Counted from the first letter of the stretch, positions 4,305-13,698 are shown. The stretch is DNA of 64,000 nt from Obrimoposthia wandeli (GCA_977020255.1 CDROCS010002432.1:124001-188000), one strand, 5' to 3'. A program made the numbers and translations. The notes: generated by a model from the sequence alone, not told the origin.

Positions 4305-5036
4305 TTATAACGTGCTTTGTTTTTCATTAGTCCAAGCATCGGCAACAAATAGATAACCTTTGCCCCAAACCGTTTTAAACTTTCGAGGTTTTTGTGGGTC
4401 GTCATTAAATATTTTACGTAACGTTGATAGCATGACATCAAATCGACGGTCTTGTCCGTCATACTCTCTATTTTTCAATGCTTTGAATACGGTATCACGA
4501 TCAACTACTTCACCAGCATGGCGAGCTAAGAAACATAGAAAGGCGAATAAGCTTGTTGATAACTCTATTTCATTACCTTGGTAAGTGACTCGATTAGCTT
4601 CGATATTAATGAGCAAATCACCGTGTTGTATATCAGAAGAAACTTCAGCTGTCGGGGTGTTTTGTTTCAATGCACCTGAGATGCGAGCTAATAAAGCACG
4701 TGGGCGTACTGGCTTGATAACATAATCGTTCGCACCAGCTTCAAGGCCAATAACTTCATCAAATTCATCGGCGCGTGCTGTTAGCATAATTATGGGTGTT
4801 TGCATTTTTTGTCGAATTTGGCGACAAACTTCAATACCATTTAAACCTGGTAACATCACATCAAGTAAAACTAAATCAGCTTGAAACTTTTCTAAGCACG
4901 CCATGACTTTATCGCCGCGGGTGCAGTGCATAACGCTAAAACCTTGTTCGGTCAAGTATTCACTTACCCAATCGCCTAACGTAAGGTCGTCTTCAACTAA
5001 TAATATTTTTGGGGAATTGGTCATCATTTTTTCCAT
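4305..5036 (-). CDS. OmpR-family response regulator (RstA-like)
   Basis: ILLVEDD, LLDVMLPG, KP, and winged-helix KTVWGKGY. Start placed at ATG 5036 (TAATG overlap with the upstream stop); 5027 is an alternative. Confidence 0.92.
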   Translation of the reverse strand: MEKMMTNSPKILLVEDDLTLGDWVSEYLTEQGFSVMHCTRGDKVMACLEKFQADLVLLDVMLPGLNGIEVCRQIRQKMQTPIIMLTARADEFDEVIGLEAGANDYVIKPVRPRALLARISGALKQNTPTAEVSSDIQHGDLLINIEANRVTYQGNEIELSTSLFAFLCFLARHAGEVVDRDTVFKALKNREYDGQDRRFDVMLSTLRKIFNDDPQKPRKFKTVWGKGYLFVADAWTNEKQSTL

Positions 5037-5449
5037 TAAAATAAACGCCAGCGGCGTTTTCTCGGTGAAGCTTCGTGTACCCAACTCACCTCGATAAGTG
5101 CGTGGGCTATCACCTGTTCTTGATCATATGCGACCAACTTGTATTGTAAACTTTTACTTGATTCAAACTCAAACGTGGCCGTGTTTTGCTGCTGGTTATA
5201 CCAACAGTCCAACGCCTGTTTTTTGCCTTCTTGATAAATACAATAATTACCTTTAACAGGGGCTTGCCATCGTAATGTTACGGATGCAAAACATTGTCGT
5301 CCTTGTGTTAATGTAACGCATTTTGCTGGCATAGCTGACAGATTGGTACTTAACGTGATTGTCGCTGGTTGCTGCTGTGCTGACGCTGTAAAAGTGCCGT
5401 ACAAACCATAAGTTAATAAGACAACTCCTATGTCCCATTTAGAAAACAT
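5036..5449 (-). CDS. DUF3019-family secreted protein
   Basis: Signal peptide; P.KCVTL.QGRQC, CIY, CW motifs; sits between mipA-like gene and response regulator. Confidence 0.75.
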   Translation of the reverse strand: MFSKWDIGVVLLTYGLYGTFTASAQQQPATITLSTNLSAMPAKCVTLTQGRQCFASVTLRWQAPVKGNYCIYQEGKKQALDCWYNQQQNTATFEFESSKSLQYKLVAYDQEQVIAHALIEVSWVHEASPRKRRWRLF

Positions 5450-6302
5450 AGATCACCCCCAGCATAACTTGCGTGATATTTTGGGCATCAACAAGCGGAC
5501 TTTCTTCTATGCTTTTAGAATAATAGCTATGGCTTATCCCGCCTGAGAATGACCATTTTTCAGAAATCGGATGCTGAGCAAATAACTCTAACTGTACGCG
5601 GTTGCCAGAATCTGACTGATGAAAAGGGCGTGCTGCAGTGATTTCACTTGAATTAACGCCATAGTAATAATCCATCACTTTTTGGGAGTAGTGGGTGTAT
5701 CCAGCGCTTAAGTAGATATCCCAGTTTCTATAAGGCAAAACATAGCTATAAAAAACATCAATAACCCAACCATTGGCACTACTGAGTGGTGCTAAGGTTG
5801 CAACATCTACTGACAGAACGGAGTTTCGATGATACCTAGAATAACGCAGGCCAATACCATCTCCTGCTGTTCGTTCTTTAAGTCCTGCTAATGTTGGGAT
5901 ACTTTTACCCGCATTGTCGATAATATCGTCGGGAATGTATCCTGACACGTAGGTTTTACTGATAATATCGAGTTCCCAGTCAGGAGTGACTTTCAGTTGA
6001 TAGCCAAGCTCGGCACCTTGCAGTAATCCTGAAGCGCGTCGATGATTTGATTGGATGAAAAACCCCTTGTAGTAAACATCGAGTAGCAATGAAGCACCAA
6101 AATAATCAAAGGCATCTTCTTGATCTTGGCCTTTAAGTAGCGAAGGATTATAAATAAGTGACATATTCGCCATGGCTTGCCAGCTAAACGTTTCGTTGAA
6201 CACCGTTGTTTCATTTTCGGGAATTTTTTCATTGGCAACGCAAAAAAAACTACTGGCGGATAAAAGGATGAAAATTAGCGATAGCAGGTATTTATTCTGC
6301 AT
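5439..6302 (-). CDS. MipA/OmpV-family outer-membrane protein
   Basis: Signal peptide, alternating beta-strand pattern, DYYYGV motif, C-terminal YVF. Confidence 0.85.
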   Translation of the reverse strand: MQNKYLLSLIFILLSASSFFCVANEKIPENETTVFNETFSWQAMANMSLIYNPSLLKGQDQEDAFDYFGASLLLDVYYKGFFIQSNHRRASGLLQGAELGYQLKVTPDWELDIISKTYVSGYIPDDIIDNAGKSIPTLAGLKERTAGDGIGLRYSRYHRNSVLSVDVATLAPLSSANGWVIDVFYSYVLPYRNWDIYLSAGYTHYSQKVMDYYYGVNSSEITAARPFHQSDSGNRVQLELFAQHPISEKWSFSGGISHSYYSKSIEESPLVDAQNITQVMLGVIYVF

Positions 6303-6535: not shown

Positions 6536-7366
6536 TTAATGGCTATGTTTTCGGGCTAAACGCTTTAAATTATTGATTGCTGCTGATGATGTTGAATAAG
6601 CTAAAACAATTTCCCGAGTCAATTGTAAGCCGGTTATTGGCCTAAAGACTACTTCGCTTTGTTTAATGATCTCGCTATGAGCCGGTAAAAAGGCACAACC
6701 TAAACCAGCATGCACTAGCCCAATAGCATAGTCGATGGTGGTTATTTTTGCTCGCACATCTAGGCTAATGCCTGCTAGTGCTAATGTATCTTGTAAATTA
6801 TTCCATGCACTGCAAGGCGTTCGCTGAATAAAAGGTAAGCCATCCAATTGCTTCAAGCTGACGGTATCGTTTAGTGCAAGTATATGGTCATAGGGCAAAG
6901 CCAGTAAGTAGTCTTCGTGCCATAGGTCAATATACTGCTCGTTTTCGGCTAATTCATCTTTCAAAATAATACGGGCATCAACATTTTCGGTATGCGGCAC
7001 TAAAGTGAGTTCAACAAAAGGTTTTGCTGAGGTAAAGTCTTTGAGTAATAAACTCATACGCTCAACGCCTAAACCACGGGTAACGCCCAAGTTAAATGGC
7101 TGTTTATTGGTTTTTTCGGCAAAAACCGTTTTAATAGCACCGGCTTGTCCTAATAATTTTTTGGCTAACGGAAAAAGTTTTTGGCCTTGCTCGGATGGCG
7201 TTACGCCACGAGCATGGCGAATGAAAAGCTGAACATTAAGTTGTCGCTCTAATTGTGCTATTGCTGCCGATATTGAAGGTTGCGCGATATAGCAGGCTTT
7301 TGCGGCGGCACTAAAGCTTTTTAATTCATAAACCGAAATAAAATAATTGAGTGATTTTAAGTCCAT
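6536..7366 (-). CDS. LysR-family regulator divergent from gcdH (GcdR-like)
   Basis: N-terminal HTH (SFSAAAKACYIAQPSISAAIAQLE) plus LysR substrate domain; divergent arrangement as for P. aeruginosa gcdR-gcdH. Confidence 0.9.
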   Translation of the reverse strand: MDLKSLNYFISVYELKSFSAAAKACYIAQPSISAAIAQLERQLNVQLFIRHARGVTPSEQGQKLFPLAKKLLGQAGAIKTVFAEKTNKQPFNLGVTRGLGVERMSLLLKDFTSAKPFVELTLVPHTENVDARIILKDELAENEQYIDLWHEDYLLALPYDHILALNDTVSLKQLDGLPFIQRTPCSAWNNLQDTLALAGISLDVRAKITTIDYAIGLVHAGLGCAFLPAHSEIIKQSEVVFRPITGLQLTREIVLAYSTSSAAINNLKRLARKHSH

Positions 7367-7387
7367 GTTGTTCTTTTTTTCTTATGT

Positions 7388-7402
7388 ATAGGAAAAAACT
7401 AT
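7388..7402. promoter_or_regulatory. LysR recognition site (T-N11-A palindrome)
   Basis: ATAG-GAAAAAA-CTAT in the lysR/gcdH divergent spacer. Confidence 0.6.
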
Positions 7403-7494
7403 AGCAGATAACAAAAAATAATATTTTAACTTTGGCTTAGTATTGCTTATTATTTTTGCACTTTAATTGTATTCACACTCATACAGGTAACTTC

Positions 7495-8688
7495 ATGTCT
7501 AATTCAAACAGTGCAAACCGTCCATCGTTTAAATGGCAAGACCCACTTTTACTCGAATCATTATTGTCTGAAGAAGAGCGAATGATCCGTGACAGTGCTC
7601 ATCAGTATTGCCAAGAAAAGCTCATGCCACGTGTGTTAGAGGCAAATCGTAATGAAGTATTTGATGTTGCAATTATGCGCGAATTAGGTGAATTAGGCCT
7701 GCTAGGTGCCACGTTACCGGAAAAATACGGCTGTGCTGGCGTAAATTATGTCACCTATGGCTTAATTGCCCGCGAAGTTGAACGTGTCGATAGTGGCTAC
7801 CGTAGTGCGATGAGTGTGCAATCGTCATTAGTGATGCACCCAATATATGCTTACGGCAGTGAAGATCAGCGCATGAAGTATTTACCTAAGTTAGCAACCG
7901 GTGAATACATTGGTTGTTTTGGTTTAACTGAGCCTAATTCAGGTTCAGATCCCGCCAGTTTACTCACCCGTGCGACGCCTGTTGATGGCGGCTACCGTAT
8001 TACCGGTAATAAAATGTGGATCACCAATTCACCTGTTGCCGATATTTTTGTCGTTTGGGCCAAGCTTGACGGTGTTATTCGTGGCTTTATCTTAGAAAAA
8101 GGCATGGAAGGTTTAAGTGCACCAAAAATTGAAGGTAAGTTTTCCTTACGCGCATCGATCACCGGTGAAATTGTTATGGACAATGTTTTTGTGCCTAGCG
8201 ATAACATGCTGCCTAATGTTAAAGGGCTATCAGGGCCATTTGGTTGTTTAAATAAAGCACGTTACGGTATTGCTTGGGGCGCATTAGGTGCTGCTGAGTT
8301 TTGTTGGCATGGCGCACGTCAATATACCCTCGACCGCGAACAATTTGGTCGCCCTTTAGCCGCTACGCAGTTGGTACAGAAAAAGTTGGCTGATATGCAA
8401 ACAGATATCAGTGTCGGCCTATTAGCTTGTTTACAAGTTGGCCGCTTAATGGACACAGATCAATTAGCACCAGAAGCTATTTCGCTCATCAAACGTAATT
8501 CATGTGGTAAAGCACTAGAAATTGCACGCATTGCCCGTGATATGCATGGCGGTAACGGCATTGCTGATGAGTTCCATGTGATTCGCCACATGATGAATCT
8601 TGAGGCGGTGAATACCTATGAAGGCACCCATGATATTCATGCCTTAATTCTCGGTAGAGCACAAACTGGCTTACAAGCTTTTTTCTAA
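7495..8688 (+). CDS. gcdH: Glutaryl-CoA dehydrogenase
   Basis: [58 protein letters not shown] are GCDH-specific. ATG 7495 preferred over 7456. Confidence 0.93.
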
Positions 8689-8702
8689 AATCAGTAACCA
8701 AT

Positions 8703-8729
8703 AAAGGCGTAGTTAATACGCCTTTTGTT
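8703..8729 (+). terminator. Intrinsic terminator-like hairpin between gcdH and the E1 gene
   Basis: AAAGGCGTA-GTTAA-TACGCCTTT followed by TGTTT. Confidence 0.6.
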
Positions 8730-8833
8730 TATCTGGCATTTGCGTTTATCTGCCGTCATGTACGGTACTGAAAATAGCTTTACAACGTTAATGTTACACC
8801 GCAGTAATAATAAAAATGTTCCGTGGAGATATC

Positions 8834-11038
8834 ATGTCTGATCGTAATCAGTTGGTGAAAGAAAATTTTATCAATTTTGTTCGTGCCCAAACCTTGCCTG
8901 CATCAACCTGTGCGTTAAGCCCGAGTGATGTTGGCTTAAGCGCCGCGGACATTATTGACTTGTTTGAAACACAAGCCATGAGTCGTCACTTAGATTTACA
9001 GTCGCGGGTGATGCAGAAAAAAGGCCAAAGCTTTTATACTATTGGTAGCTCTGGCCATGAAGGGAATGCTGCTTACGCGAAAGCATTTCGTCCAACTGAT
9101 ATGGCTTTTTTACATTATCGCAGTGGTGCTTTTGTTATACAGCGCGGTAAACAAGTCCCCGGCCAAACGCCTTTATATGACATGCTATTGTCATTTGCCG
9201 CCTCGAAAGACGATCCTATTTCCGGTGGTCGTCATAAAGTACTGGGTAGTAAAGCGCTCTCTATTCCACCGCAAACCAGTACCATAGCGTCACATTTACC
9301 CAAGGCGATGGGCGCAGCTTATAGTATTCCACTGGCGAAGCGTTTAGCACATAAAGGTGAAATCCCTGATGACGGCATCATTATTTGTAATTTTGGTGAC
9401 GCCTCATCAAACCACTCAACAACGCAAGGCGCAATTAACAGTACGGCTTGGGCGTCGTATCAGTCGATACCTATGCCGATTGTCTTTATTTGTGAAGATA
9501 ATGGCATTGGTATTTCAACCGCGACGCCGGCAGGCTGGATTGCCGCTAACTATAAAAACAGAGTCGGATTAACATATATTTATTGTGACGGCCTAAATAT
9601 TTTAGACACCTACAAAGCCGCGAAAGAAGCAGAACGTATTGCCCGAGAACTGCGTAAACCAGTATTTTTACATGTGCGTACAGTGCGCTTACTTGGCCAT
9701 GCGGGTTCAGATGCGGAATTTGTTTATCGAGAACTTGACGATATAACCGCCACTGAGTTTCAAGACCCGCTATTACACACGGCACGTATTATCCTAGAGC
9801 ACAATTTATTAACGACTGAAGAACTGATCGCCATGTACGAAAATATTGCCCTGCGTATTACGGTCATTGCTGACAGTGCGGCCAGTAAAGAAAAGCTCAC
9901 CAGTGCTGATGCTATTATGGCGAGTATTATTCCTGAATTTACTAAAGCACGAAGCTCAGTAACAGTGAGCGGTGAAACTCGAACAGAAATTTTCCAGCAC
10001 GAAAAACACAACTTAACCAAAAAGCAGCATTTAGCGAAACTGATTAATTGGACCTTGATCGATCTAATGGCTGAATATCCTAATATCGTTATGTGCGGTG
10101 AAGACATCGGGAAAAAAGGTGGCGTTTATAATGTTACGGCTAAGCTGTGTGAGCGTTTCAGTAAAAACCGAGTCATTAATACTCTGCTTGATGAGCAAAC
10201 CATTTTAGGCACGGCTATTGGCTTGGCACATAATGGTTTTCTACCGATACCTGAAATTCAGTTCTTAGCTTATGTGCATAACGCGGAAGATCAAATTCGT
10301 GGTGAAGCAGCAACCTTACCGTTTTTCTCTAATGGCCAATTTACGAACCCTATGGTGATTCGCATTGCCGGCCTAGCTTATCAAAAAGGTTTTGGCGGCC
10401 ATTTTCATAATGATAATTCTTTTGCGGTTTTTCGTGATATTCCAGGATTAATTATTGCGTGTCCGTCAAATGGTGCCGATGCGGTGGAAATGTTGCGTGC
10501 CAGTGTGCGTTTAGCACAAGAGCAACAGCGCATGGTGATATTTTTAGAACCCATAGCACTTTACATGGCGAAAGATTTACACCAAGAAGGTGATGGCCTG
10601 TGGACCTTTAAATACCAGCCTCCGAAATTGACGGATAGTACCATTGATTTAGGCGTTAAGGTCGCCGGCGAAGGTAAGCAGCTTTGTATTTTAACTTACG
10701 GCAATGGTTATTATCTGTCGCGCAAAGCACAAGTATTACTGGCTGAGCAGGGCATTGATGCACGCGTTGTTGATTTACGTTGGTTAGCTCCACTTGACGA
10801 AAAAGGTATTTTGGCGCAGGTGAATGCTTGTGAGCAGGTGTTAATTGTTGATGAATGCCGCCAAACCGGATCTATTAGTGAAGCTTTAGTGACGCTAATT
10901 CATGAGCAAGCGACGAACCGTTGTAAAATAAAACGGGTTACGGCCAGTGATAGCTTTATTCCATTGGGCGCAGCCGCTTATGAAGTGCTGCCATCAGTGG
11001 AAAATATTGTCATGGCTGCGAAGGAGATTTGCCAATGA
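8834..11038 (+). CDS. ThDP-dependent 2-oxoacid dehydrogenase E1, fused alpha+beta
   Basis: Alpha: GDAS...CEDNG ThDP motif and RLLGHAGSD loop. Beta: GEDIG..GGV, DEQ, EIQF, VVDLRWL.PLD. GGAG RBS precedes ATG 8834. Confidence 0.88.
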   Translation: MSDRNQLVKENFINFVRAQTLPASTCALSPSDVGLSAADIIDLFETQAMSRHLDLQSRVMQKKGQSFYTIGSSGHEGNAAYAKAFRPTDMAFLHYRSGAFVIQRGKQVPGQTPLYDMLLSFAASKDDPISGGRHKVLGSKALSIPPQTSTIASHLPKAMGAAYSIPLAKRLAHKGEIPDDGIIICNFGDASSNHSTTQGAINSTAWASYQSIPMPIVFICEDNGIGISTATPAGWIAANYKNRVGLTYIYCDGLNILDTYKAAKEAERIARELRKPVFLHVRTVRLLGHAGSDAEFVYRELDDITATEFQDPLLHTARIILEHNLLTTEELIAMYENIALRITVIADSAASKEKLTSADAIMASIIPEFTKARSSVTVSGETRTEIFQHEKHNLTKKQHLAKLINWTLIDLMAEYPNIVMCGEDIGKKGGVYNVTAKLCERFSKNRVINTLLDEQTILGTAIGLAHNGFLPIPEIQFLAYVHNAEDQIRGEAATLPFFSNGQFTNPMVIRIAGLAYQKGFGGHFHNDNSFAVFRDIPGLIIACPSNGADAVEMLRASVRLAQEQQRMVIFLEPIALYMAKDLHQEGDGLWTFKYQPPKLTDSTIDLGVKVAGEGKQLCILTYGNGYYLSRKAQVLLAEQGIDARVVDLRWLAPLDEKGILAQVNACEQVLIVDECRQTGSISEALVTLIHEQATNRCKIKRVTASDSFIPLGAAAYEVLPSVENIVMAAKEICQ

Positions 11039-12102
11039 GTTCATTAGAAAATAATGTCGCTAAAAGTAAGCAAAGAGCCGTTGTTATTTGCCCAGGGCGT
11101 GGTACTTACAATAAAGAAGAATTAGGCTATTTACAGCGTTTACATGGAGATAAAACTGAGATCATTAACCTGATAGATGGCTACCGTGATAGCAAAGAAC
11201 AAGTGAAAGTGTCTGAGCTCGATGCTATGGAAAATTTCAGCATGCGCCTACATACTGCTGGCGAAAATGCTTCCGCGCTGATTTATGCTTGTGCATTAGC
11301 TGACTACCAAGCGATTAATAAAGCTGAGTTTGATATTGTTGCAGTGACGGGTAATTCGATGGGGTGGTATATTGCGCTAGCCGTAGCACAGGCGCTTCAA
11401 CCTCAGCAAGCGATTGAGTTAATTAATACCATGGGCTCAATGATGACGGATGGTGTTATAGGTGGACAAATGATCTACCCAATCATTAACGATGATTGGC
11501 AAGTTGATGAACAAAAGCAACAACAGCTAATGCAGTGGCTGGCAGAGGCAAATCAACCCAGTGGTTGTGAAGTTTATCTATCGATTAACTTAGGCGGCTA
11601 TTTAGTTTTTGGTGGCAATAAGGCTGGCTTAAAAGCACTTGAGGTCTTATTACCTGTGGTGCAAGACCGTTATCCGATGAACTTATTTAATCATGCTGCT
11701 TTTCATACCCCCTTACTTCAAGATGTTTCGACACGTGCTATGTCGTTAATGTCAGCAGATATTTTTAATGCGCCCAAAATACCGTTAATTGATGGGACAG
11801 GGCATATATGGCAACCCTACAGTTGCGATGTTGACCAGTTATATAACTACACCCTGAATACCCAAGTAGTAACACCATATAACTTTTCAAAAGCAATAGA
11901 AGTGGCTATTAAAGAGTTCGCGCCAGATAAGTTGATTATATTGGGACCAGGCTCTACCTTAGGTGGTGCTGTTGCGCAAAGTTTGATCAGCCATCATTGG
12001 CATAACTTACAAAACAAGTCGGACTTTATAGCGTTGCAAAAACAAGACCCTTTTATACTCGCAATGGGCTTAGCTGAACAGCGTAACAAGGTGCTCAGAT
12101 AA
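11035..12102 (+). CDS. FabD/acyltransferase-fold protein with altered specificity residues
   Basis: CPGRG (versus FPGQG), GNSMG nucleophile motif, AAFHTPLL. AAGGAG RBS and ATGA overlap with the E1 stop. Confidence 0.8.
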   Translation: MSSLENNVAKSKQRAVVICPGRGTYNKEELGYLQRLHGDKTEIINLIDGYRDSKEQVKVSELDAMENFSMRLHTAGENASALIYACALADYQAINKAEFDIVAVTGNSMGWYIALAVAQALQPQQAIELINTMGSMMTDGVIGGQMIYPIINDDWQVDEQKQQQLMQWLAEANQPSGCEVYLSINLGGYLVFGGNKAGLKALEVLLPVVQDRYPMNLFNHAAFHTPLLQDVSTRAMSLMSADIFNAPKIPLIDGTGHIWQPYSCDVDQLYNYTLNTQVVTPYNFSKAIEVAIKEFAPDKLIILGPGSTLGGAVAQSLISHHWHNLQNKSDFIALQKQDPFILAMGLAEQRNKVLR

Positions 12103-12913: not shown

Positions 12914-13348
12914 ATGAAAAATAATAATTTAGCTACAGAGAGTGAAGCGATAGCTAGTGTAAATTATAGCGATGGCTTTACGTTCGATTTTAATGATGAT
13001 GGCCGCTTAATTAATGTTTTTGGCTCGGCATGGACCGGCAAAGAGACCGTGTCATTTAATGGTAAGGTTATTGCTAAAAAGCGTTCTTATACACGTAAAT
13101 CAATACTAGAGTTTACGGTTGAAGGTGACCGATATGAAGTTGAGTTCAACATGGTTGATATGTTGCGGGGTGAGCTGCATTGTACATTGATTAAAAATGG
13201 TGTGCATTTTAAAACCTTGAGAAAGGCACTGGTGAATAAATATCAAATAACCTCAAAATCATGGTGGAAGATGTTACTTTTATTCTTTGTTGGTGGGTTT
13301 TCTGGATATATAGCGGTGCATTTTATTTTTAAATTTTTTGGCGAGTAG
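12914..13348 (+). CDS. Hypothetical protein with C-terminal TM helix
   Basis: 144-aa ORF, AAGGAA RBS, hydrophobic C-terminus. Confidence 0.75.
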   Translation: MKNNNLATESEAIASVNYSDGFTFDFNDDGRLINVFGSAWTGKETVSFNGKVIAKKRSYTRKSILEFTVEGDRYEVEFNMVDMLRGELHCTLIKNGVHFKTLRKALVNKYQITSKSWWKMLLLFFVGGFSGYIAVHFIFKFFGE

Positions 13349-13377
13349 TCCAAGTATGTTAATAGGAGCTACAAACC

Positions 13378-13698
13378 ATGGAAATTAATGCCTTAAAGGT
13401 AAAAGAATTACGAACTGAACAGCTTTGGACGCAACAACACTTAGCTGATGCATGTGACATAAGTTTACGGACCGTACAACGAGTAGAGCGCTACGGTAAT
13501 GCTTCAAATGAAACACTGATGAGCTTAGCCGCAGTGTTTAATATTGACAAAAAAACACTGCTTGTTGACGTTGAACCCGTAGAAGTTATTGAACATGTTG
13601 CAGGGTTAAGTCAAAAGCAATTATTAATATTGGCAACAGCTACAGGTACTGTTATTGGCGCATCTTTAATGTATTTAATGATGTTAATAGAGCTTTAA
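13378..13698 (+). CDS. XRE/Cro-C1 HTH protein with C-terminal TM helix
   Basis: WTQQHLADACDISLRTVQRVE HTH_3 motif; hydrophobic tail; AGGAG RBS. Confidence 0.85.
   Translation: MEINALKVKELRTEQLWTQQHLADACDISLRTVQRVERYGNASNETLMSLAAVFNIDKKTLLVDVEPVEVIEHVAGLSQKQLLILATATGTVIGASLMYLMMLIEL

Follow-up and report, generated by a model that had tools for sequence, protein, structure and literature searches.

The window, i.e. the whole 64,000-nucleotide stretch analysed here, is Colwellia-like marine bacterial DNA in which a LysR-family regulator gene is divergent from a short run of genes encoding GcdH, a fused ThDP-dependent E1 and a FabD-fold acyltransferase, hereafter AT (Table 1). All the parts listed in an earlier note on this DNA (the divergent LysR and its box, gcdH, the fused E1 and the ATGA-coupled FabD-fold gene) are present. 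Its claim that the cluster holds no E2, E3, ACP or FAS/PKS gene is borne out by profile searches, which covered 2.9-18.7 kb of the window and found none, and a motif scan of all 64 kb likewise turned up no E2, E3 or lipoyl motif. Lysine genes are absent from the window too, which speaks against the module favoured below.

Table 1. Features of the gcdH-E1-AT locus (positions counted from the first letter of the window)
Feature	Position	Strand	Basis
LysR-family regulator	6536..7366	-	Pfam HTH_1 and LysR_substrate; divergent from gcdH
ATAG-N7-CTAT LysR-type box (T-N11-A)	7388..7402	.	half-sites kept in related spacers
gcdH, decarboxylating glutaryl-CoA dehydrogenase	7495..8688	+	similarity to solved GcdH/GCDH; catalytic residues
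Hairpin plus T-run resembling a terminator, in the gcdH-E1 spacer	8703..8725	+	consensus scan and sequence
Fused alpha/beta ThDP-dependent E1, candidate 2-oxoadipate dehydrogenase E1	8834..11038	+	Pfam domains
FabD-fold acyltransferase (AT), E1 partner	11035..12102	+	ATGA overlap with E1 stop; modelled fold

The regulatory end of the locus is GcdR-like in its arrangement, with a divergent LysR gene and, in the spacer shared with gcdH, a T-N11-A box lying 21 nt ahead of the LysR start. In 28 of 80 related loci, every one of them gammaproteobacterial, a LysR gene lies in this position. Of 26 LysR-gcdH spacers, from taxa ranging from Colwellia to Shewanella and Motiliproteus, 25 retain the half-sites while the N7 between them varies, which is far more than chance would give. 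The gcdH product, read from its best start at ATG 7495, has 397 aa like its relatives and matches solved enzymes over its full length (3gnc, E 1e-189, 634 bits; human 1sir, E 1e-187, 625 bits). It keeps Glu370 and Tyr369, which we take to be catalytic, as well as Arg94 and Ser98, the presumed carboxylate-binding residues (human numbering), and NTYEGT and a 13-letter protein stretch are likewise conserved. The spacer between gcdH and E1 is 145 nt long here and holds the hairpin; in 15 other taxa it measures 5-60 nt, so gcdH, E1 and AT generally form one operon. In Colwellia, the hairpin may attenuate read-through from gcdH into E1, and its position counts against the catabolic module favoured below. 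Expression in a relative is weakly indicated by metatranscriptome contigs that cover gcdH, E1 and the E1/AT junction.

The E1 is a single chain of 734 aa, as in its relatives, when read from its best start (ATG 8834, with GGAG upstream), and it exceeds the Pfam cut-offs for E1_dh (101.5 versus 22 bits), Transket_pyr (81.4 versus 27) and Transketolase_C (70.8 versus 25.9). Its ThDP-binding motif of the GDG...NN type, FGDAS..NH...CEDNGIGIS, is invariant in sets of 73 and 17 family members, and so are GHAGSD and GGHFHND across the family, which align to the alpha and beta catalytic His of alpha2beta2 E1s. The two invariant His are the counterparts of His291-alpha of human E1b (His271 in Bacillus stearothermophilus) and of His146/His128-beta, whose role we take to be the reductive acylation of lipoamide. 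Of the solved structures, 34 match at E<=1e-5, and each is an alpha or a beta chain from an E1 of the PDH/BCKDH type, with no OGDH or DHTKD1 chain among them. The best of these, the heterotetrameric E1s of Thermus thermophilus (1um9), B. stearothermophilus (1w85) and human (1dtw), resemble the window E1 in all three Pfam domains, in the ThDP motif and in both His, but differ in that alpha and beta form one chain here, in the low level of identity (E 1e-40 for beta, 1e-20 for alpha) and in that a FabD-fold gene is coupled to it instead of a cognate E2/E3 in the operon. Both the E1 and the AT lack a redox cofactor domain and any conserved redox motif.

The AT has no Pfam match and scores far below the cut-offs of TIGR00128 (54.3 versus 260.9 bits) and MdcH (51.3 versus 297.9); its predicted structure (pLDDT 96.5) nevertheless adopts the FabD fold, with TM scores of 0.72-0.84 to 3k89, 1mla and 6u0j (Foldseek E 5e-18). 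With the malonyl-CoA:ACP transacylase FabD (1mla, 3hjv, 3k89) it has in common the nucleophilic Ser in a GxSxG turn, the catalytic His and the counterpart of Gln250: Ser108 (in GNSMGWY) and His224, which correspond to E. coli FabD Ser92 and His201, are invariant in 42 members, Gln277 occurs in at least 90% of them, and Arg22 and Arg51 are also nearly invariant. In contrast to FabD, to which it is 16-20% identical, the AT reads GNSMGWY for GHSLGEY, lacks an ACP or fab context and has an E1 as its partner. The position of FabD Arg117, the binder of the malonyl carboxylate, is occupied by Met within TMG (some members have V, A or T), and that of Gln11 by Arg, two exchanges that together would suit a longer dicarboxylyl group.

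How tightly are the two proteins linked? In a survey from the AT side, which sampled 80 of at least 598 genomes, the AT directly follows a fused E1 in 79 of 79 loci, including relatives at 30-39% identity, and from the E1 side the AT is next in 65 of 73 metagenome loci. Stop/start overlaps (ATGA, TAATG, TGATG) join the two genes in most loci, and in eukaryote-like marine contigs the E1 C-terminal domain and the AT are naturally fused in one ORF, the fusion gene standing head to head with a GCDH gene. Judged by this adjacency, overlap and fusion, the AT is the dedicated partner of this E1. The remaining eight E1 loci (8/73), scattered over the E1 tree and some still beside gcdH or AmaB/LysDH, have no AT, which means that the AT is dispensable or encoded elsewhere. 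No E2/E3 family recurs in the E1-AT neighbourhoods (165 loci, 1.95 Mb), and the same loci contain no ORF with a DHRxxDG, CxNxGCxPSK or lipoyl-Lys motif.

The company kept by the pair points to its substrate. In two surveys, gcdH adjoins E1-AT in 50 of 80 and 35 of 80 loci, arranged in four different ways, with the orthologues in the former being 70-94% identical. This adjacency recurs across many phyla, with cases in Gamma- and Alphaproteobacteria, in Bdellovibrionota and on a eukaryote-like contig. About 17 clusters (7 genome and 10 metagenome loci) further include genes for a lysine 6-dehydrogenase-like protein (LysDH-like; best solved relative 3abi), the aminoadipate-semialdehyde dehydrogenase AmaB (NF050084, 824 bits), a D-amino-acid transaminase and an AsnC regulator; this tie to lysine-to-2-aminoadipate genes argues for 2-oxoadipate as the substrate. 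To our knowledge, 2-oxoadipate oxidation is the sole ThDP step adjoining GcdH in known pathways. The substrate of the E1 is probably 2-oxoadipate or a close dicarboxylic 2-oxoacid. The proposal of the earlier note that the cluster leads from 2-oxoadipate to glutaryl-CoA is well supported by context, given the AT/E1/GcdH linkage, the fusion, the lysine genes and the kept box; it is in this context that the choice of substrate is grounded, and no gcdH was found near the distant E1-AT pairs (AT relatives at 30-39% identity), so the substrate may differ between clades. In a marine Roseobacter, a 2-aminoadipate branch to glutaryl-CoA has been described without a gene assigned to the 2-oxoadipate step (PMC5653290).

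We would give roughly even odds to the view that gcdH, E1 and AT form a LysR-controlled catabolic module converting 2-oxoadipate via glutaryl-CoA to crotonyl-CoA, in which the E1 and AT would act as follows. 2-Oxoadipate, coming from lysine via 2-aminoadipate and possibly from tryptophan too, would be decarboxylated by the fused E1, in this view a ThDP enzyme from the PDH/BCKDH (alpha2beta2) lineage that is specific for 2-oxoadipate; the E1 would then reductively glutarylate a lipoyl arm, as its relatives do. This borrowed arm would belong to an E2 or GcvH whose gene lies outside the cluster, and the housekeeping Lpd would reoxidise it. The AT, whose translation is coupled to that of the E1 and which probably binds the E1, would take the glutaryl group on Ser108 and pass it to CoA, the job of an E2 catalytic core, and GcdH would finally oxidise and decarboxylate glutaryl-CoA. 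What the data show are the identities of the genes, their conserved linkage and catalytic residues and the natural fusion, whereas we infer which substrate the E1 uses, which protein donates the lipoyl arm, and in which direction and to which acceptor the AT works; that the AT is a transacylase to CoA we rate a little short of an even bet, and we know of no FabD-fold enzyme that uses a lipoyl arm as donor. More tentative still is the notion of a coreless unit of fused E1 and FabD-fold AT, in which the AT would replace the E2 core and be acylated either by a borrowed lipoyl arm or straight from ThDP. Of the two roles formerly suggested for the AT, replacing or assisting E2, assistance fits the data better because both His are invariant, some E1s occur without an AT, and an oxidant is needed, an E1 plus a Ser-His AT having none for the ThDP enamine.

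Could the AT be no more than an accessory? The E1 might plug into a housekeeping E2/E3 core that itself makes glutaryl-CoA, as DHTKD1 does with DLST and DLD, leaving the AT as an accessory, for example a scaffold or an editing hydrolase or transacylase that removes wrongly attached glutaryl groups from the thiols of lipoyl, ACP or CoA. The two invariant lipoyl-acylation His agree with this, as do the E1 loci without AT, several of which retain gcdH or lysine genes, and the observation that in the loci examined the AT never occurs without the E1, as expected of an accessory. Nevertheless, we consider this scenario unlikely, as the invariant Ser-His dyad, the translational coupling and the natural fusion speak for a stoichiometric catalytic function, and the position matching B. 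stearothermophilus E1-beta Glu285, which we take to be a PSBD contact, is Arg here in a stretch that is not conserved. The strict form of the earlier idea dispenses with lipoate altogether: Ser108 would take glutaryl directly from glutaryl-ThDP after oxidation by some acceptor, giving an E1-AT 2-oxoadipate:CoA system. It would account for the missing E2, E3 and lipoyl genes in the 165 loci and for a pair that is self-contained across very distant clades and fused in one organism, but the lack of redox domains or motifs and the retained lipoyl-reaction His make it improbable, and no E1 that works in this way is known to us.

The remaining alternatives concern the substrate and the chemistry of the E1. 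Databases name it a 2-oxoisovalerate dehydrogenase E1 or a BCKDH E1, in keeping with its BCKDH/PDH structural relatives, so that E1-AT might act on a branched-chain or other 2-oxoacid and load the acyl group onto CoA or ACP, the proximity of gcdH reflecting a shared regulon rather than consecutive steps; the distant pairs without gcdH, and an AT relative at 29% identity that adjoins an 80-aa ORF and an AsnB-like gene, would be in line with this. Against such a reading stand a GcdH adjacency recurring in four gene orders, several lineages and a eukaryote-like contig, and AmaB, LysDH and transaminase genes in the same clusters, and we deem it as improbable as the lipoate-free system. Least probable is a non-oxidative 2-oxoadipate decarboxylase yielding glutarate semialdehyde, with an unrelated role for the AT: although it explains why E2/E3 are missing from the cluster, the clusters contain neither an aldehyde dehydrogenase for the semialdehyde nor a glutarate CoA-transferase to reach the GcdH substrate, and both reductive-acylation His are kept.

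A full-text literature search found no published description of a fused E1 paired with a FabD-fold AT, in agreement with the earlier note, whose author knew of no biochemical description of it. If true, the coreless E1-AT unit would supply the 2-oxoadipate dehydrogenase so far missing from bacteria and algae and would be a new architecture for 2-oxoacid oxidation, present in hundreds of bacterial species and as a single fused protein in a marine eukaryote. ThDP E1-like enzymes that work without a classical complex and load an acyl group onto a thiol carrier, as proposed here, are exemplified by QncN/QncL/QncM and NapB/NapD, in which an E1/transketolase-like enzyme, a lipoyl E2-like protein and an ACP yield glycolicacyl-S-ACP; these systems are biosynthetic, bring their own lipoyl E2-like protein and ACP and have no FabD-fold partner, whereas the context here is catabolic. 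In the glutarate route of Pseudomonas putida, the gene order is gcdR-gcdH-gcoT (gcdG). A divergent LysR and a gene after gcdH that supplies glutaryl-CoA occur there as they do here, but in P. putida a type III CoA-transferase makes it from glutarate, whereas E1-AT implies entry from 2-oxoadipate (10.1101/557751; PMC5974017). The proposed reaction and the next enzyme are the same as in the human 2-oxoadipate dehydrogenase complex (DHTKD1 as E1a, DLST as E2o, DLD as E3) followed by GCDH, and DHTKD1 likewise has no E2/E3 of its own and borrows both (10.1101/2020.01.20.912931; PMC8146983). DHTKD1 is a homodimeric OGDH-type E1 without an AT partner, whereas the window E1 is an alpha-beta fusion whose matches among solved structures are all of the alpha2beta2 type; in the explanation we favour, the latter would be a functional analogue rather than a homologue of the human enzyme.

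The stretch carrying the fused alpha/beta 2-oxoacid dehydrogenase E1 and the FabD-fold acyltransferase (AT) is Colwellia-like gammaproteobacterial chromosome. Relatives of AT and E1 that are 93% and 97% identical, respectively, occur in marine assemblies, and the named relatives of both proteins, 80-90% identical, belong to Colwellia and Cognaticolwellia. The cluster has the composition that the earlier note ascribed to it, i.e. LysR, gcdH, the fused E1 and an AT gene overlapping the E1 stop, with no E2, E3, ACP or FAS/PKS gene nearby; neither E2/E3/lipoyl motifs nor lysine genes were found anywhere in the window.

Coordinates of the features discussed, in the window unless a related locus is named
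Feature	Location	Strand	Remarks
Response regulator, 137-aa ORF, OmpV-like gene	4305-6302		upstream of LysR
LysR	6536-7366	-	
ATAG-N7-CTAT LysR box	7388-7402		exact coordinates
gcdH	7495-8688	+	start codon revised; length as in relatives
Terminator-like hairpin	8703-8725		gcdH-E1 spacer; 9-bp GC-containing stem, then TGTTTAT
Fused alpha/beta E1	8834-11038	+	start codon revised; length as in relatives
FabD-fold AT	11035-12102	+	ATGA overlap with E1 stop
144-aa ORF and 106-aa HTH_3 protein	12914-13698		between argR and galM; GC 0.354
E1-AT fusion gene	L172:4397-8081		eukaryote-like marine contigs; also L173, L174
GCDH homologue	L172:3860-2379		head to head, upstream of the fusion gene
AT relative, 80-aa ORF, amidotransferase	L081:393-3762		

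AT is named 'ACP S-malonyltransferase' in databases; it has no Pfam match, and its FabD and MdcH scores are weak. Its structure model is nevertheless confident (pLDDT 96.5) and adopts the FabD fold. Across 42 diverse members of the family, Ser108 (in GNSMGWY) and His224 are invariant, the counterpart of FabD Gln250 is retained and FabD Gln11 is replaced by a nearly invariant Arg, while the malonyl-binding Arg117 of FabD is Met in AT. The roles attached here to conserved residues of FabD, E1 and GCDH are those that we take to be established in the literature. With the carboxylate-binding arginine thus moved from position 117 to position 11 (FabD numbering), the site would be suited to a dicarboxylyl group that exceeds malonyl by two carbons. 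Clustering at 50% identity (E<1e-30) gives 124 clusters, a distinct family of moderate size. In locus L081, a relative only 29% identical to AT precedes an 80-aa ORF lacking a Pfam match and an asparagine-synthase-like amidotransferase. The 392 nt upstream show no E1, and this relative may belong to a sister subfamily that has a small carrier protein as its partner.

An AT-based genome scan matched at least 598 species, and 80 loci were retained. The fused E1 directly precedes AT in all 79 loci having upstream DNA, as the earlier note would lead one to expect, and in most AT loci the E1 stop and AT start codons overlap or abut; even where an AT relative is only 30-39% identical, a fused E1 precedes it and the two genes share 4 nt. 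When an E1 profile was used instead, 80 metagenome loci were obtained, and AT lies immediately 3' of E1 in 65 of the 73 with room downstream. An HMM search in all six frames found no AT in the other eight (L107, L111, L122, L123, L136, L138, L142 and L162), whose E1s are 50-57% identical and scattered over the E1 tree. A GcdH-like gene directly follows E1 in L122 and in a further E1 locus, L140, and AmaB and a LysDH-like gene come after E1 in L142. E1 can thus occur without an adjacent AT.

The two proteins are also found naturally joined. Among the apparent AT fusion proteins, P0240 is the only credible E1-AT fusion; P0171, P0182, P0192 and P0165 were rejected as chimeric fragments. In the fusion ORF the C-terminal domain of E1 is joined to an AT that retains the catalytic Ser and His. 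The contigs have a GC content of 0.64, coding sequence split by gaps of ~150-230 nt and a nearby metacaspase with a SAP domain, and from this gene structure and these neighbours we infer a eukaryotic origin. Given the unbroken adjacency on the AT side, the distant pairs, the E1-side counts and this fusion, AT is a dedicated partner of the fused E1.

E1 itself is a single chain that unites all three alpha2beta2-type E1 domains. Its best solved relatives are the BCKDH E1s of T. thermophilus and P. putida and the PDH E1 of B. stearothermophilus, with no OGDH or DHTKD1 chain matched among the solved relatives. Database names include '2-oxoisovalerate dehydrogenase E1' and 'dehydrogenase E1 component subunit alpha/beta', and some NCBI records label close relatives 'MFS transporter', an evident annotation error. 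Invariant across the family are the ThDP motif and the two histidines that serve decarboxylation and reductive lipoamide acylation in alpha2beta2 relatives. The counterpart of B. stearothermophilus E1-beta Glu285, a contact of the peripheral subunit-binding domain (PSBD) of E2 and the single such contact considered, is an Arg lying within an unconserved stretch.

What substrate might such an enzyme serve? The GcdH of the window is canonical both in its scores (634 bits against Burkholderia GcdH, 625 bits against human GCDH) and in its residues, Arg94, Ser98, Tyr369 and Glu370 all being in place. A canonical GcdH adjoins E1-AT in 50 of the 80 genome loci and 35 of the 80 metagenome loci, in four gene orders: gcdH-E1-AT; gcdH divergent from E1-AT (Micavibrio, Bdellovibrionota); E1-AT-gcdH (one marine clade); and E1-gcdH without AT. 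Some clusters, among them those of Hoeflea, Nitratireductor and Aliiroseovarius, have four additional genes, encoding a lysine 6-dehydrogenase-like protein (best solved relative 3abi), an L-piperideine-6-carboxylate (2-aminoadipate semialdehyde) dehydrogenase (824 bits, cut-off 730), a D-amino-acid transaminase and an AsnC regulator. Together these genes would spell a route from lysine through 2-aminoadipate semialdehyde, 2-aminoadipate, 2-oxoadipate and glutaryl-CoA to crotonyl-CoA; the conversion of 2-oxoadipate to glutaryl-CoA alone would be left to the ThDP E1. Further gene families each occur in at most 9 of the 80 neighbourhoods, and 165 loci (1.95 Mb) are devoid of E2 catalytic, E3 disulfide and lipoyl-lysine motifs. 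Seven Hyphomonadaceae- or Parvularculaceae-like loci (L049, L053, L058, L066-L068 and L077) have no gcdH near E1-AT; they carry a divergent nitroreductase-family gene, YceI and cytochrome b561-YceI genes and a Crp-family regulator.

The functions that we infer for the E1-AT module derive from this context and from conserved residues. Conversion of a 2-oxoacid to an acyl-CoA requires a prior two-electron oxidation of the ThDP enamine, for which the lipoyl disulfide is the acceptor in the E1 family, and an E1 with a Ser-His acyltransferase alone therefore cannot yield acyl-CoA. The strict reading of the earlier proposal, in which E1 and AT act without any lipoyl protein, would require a further oxidant, and for that reason we rate it very improbable. 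Because neither E1 nor AT contains a redox domain and the histidines of the lipoyl reaction are invariant, a lipoyl arm acting in trans is favoured. E1 would reductively glutarylate the lipoyl arm of a protein supplied in trans, AT, synthesised alongside E1 and probably in complex with it, would transfer the glutaryl group via Ser108 to CoA, and dihydrolipoamide dehydrogenase (Lpd) would reoxidise the arm; we consider the chances of this scheme to be evenly balanced. It is also conceivable, if rather unlikely, that a resident E2 performs the transfer and AT is an accessory. The E1 loci devoid of AT keep this alternative alive, as they indicate that AT is not always needed beside E1.

We class the system as a 2-oxoacid dehydrogenase E1 with a partner lacking precedent. 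A FabD-fold enzyme as obligate partner of such an E1 would be a new enzyme partnership and, if AT performs the transacylase job of E2, a second solution to the acyl hand-off in this family. We know of no gene assigned to the conversion of 2-oxoadipate to glutaryl-CoA outside animals, a step that pathway maps fill with the OGDH complex. In agreement with the earlier note, no description of the E1-AT pairing was found in full-text searches of the literature outside subscription journals, nor was any bacterial gene for this step. Among the publications retrieved, those on 2-oxoadipate dehydrogenase concern DHTKD1, and those on Pseudomonas describe HglS or glutarate routes; Agrobacterium uses CaiB. 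In a labelling study of the marine Roseobacter Phaeobacter, the 2-aminoadipate branch reaches glutaryl-CoA by an enzyme left unnamed (PMC5653290). The gcdH-E1-AT module may close this gap, for which it is a concrete and widespread candidate, and thousands of entries bearing the malonyltransferase and 2-oxoisovalerate dehydrogenase names would then be corrected.

As to regulation, the LysR gene and its box are conserved in gammaproteobacteria, the box occurring in 25 of 26 spacers with a variable N7. The hairpin behind gcdH may act as a partial terminator, keeping gcdH at a higher level than E1-AT; the gcdH-E1 spacer is shorter than 60 nt in 15 other taxa. RNA contigs came from one metatranscriptome only, from a relative 90-95% identical, and speak to presence in an RNA library rather than to operon structure. 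Upstream, the cluster is flanked by an RstAB-like two-component system, the 137-aa unannotated ORF and the OmpV-like gene, and the synteny of the response regulator with the latter two is common to Colwellia and Shewanella loci (L024, L025, L030, L031). Downstream lie argR, the 144-aa ORF, the HTH gene, galM, ispB, rplU, rpmA and obg. The 144-aa ORF, which has no family match, and its HTH_3 neighbour also occur as a pair in Cognaticolwellia aestuarii (L002), and look like a small inserted cassette, perhaps toxin-antitoxin-like.
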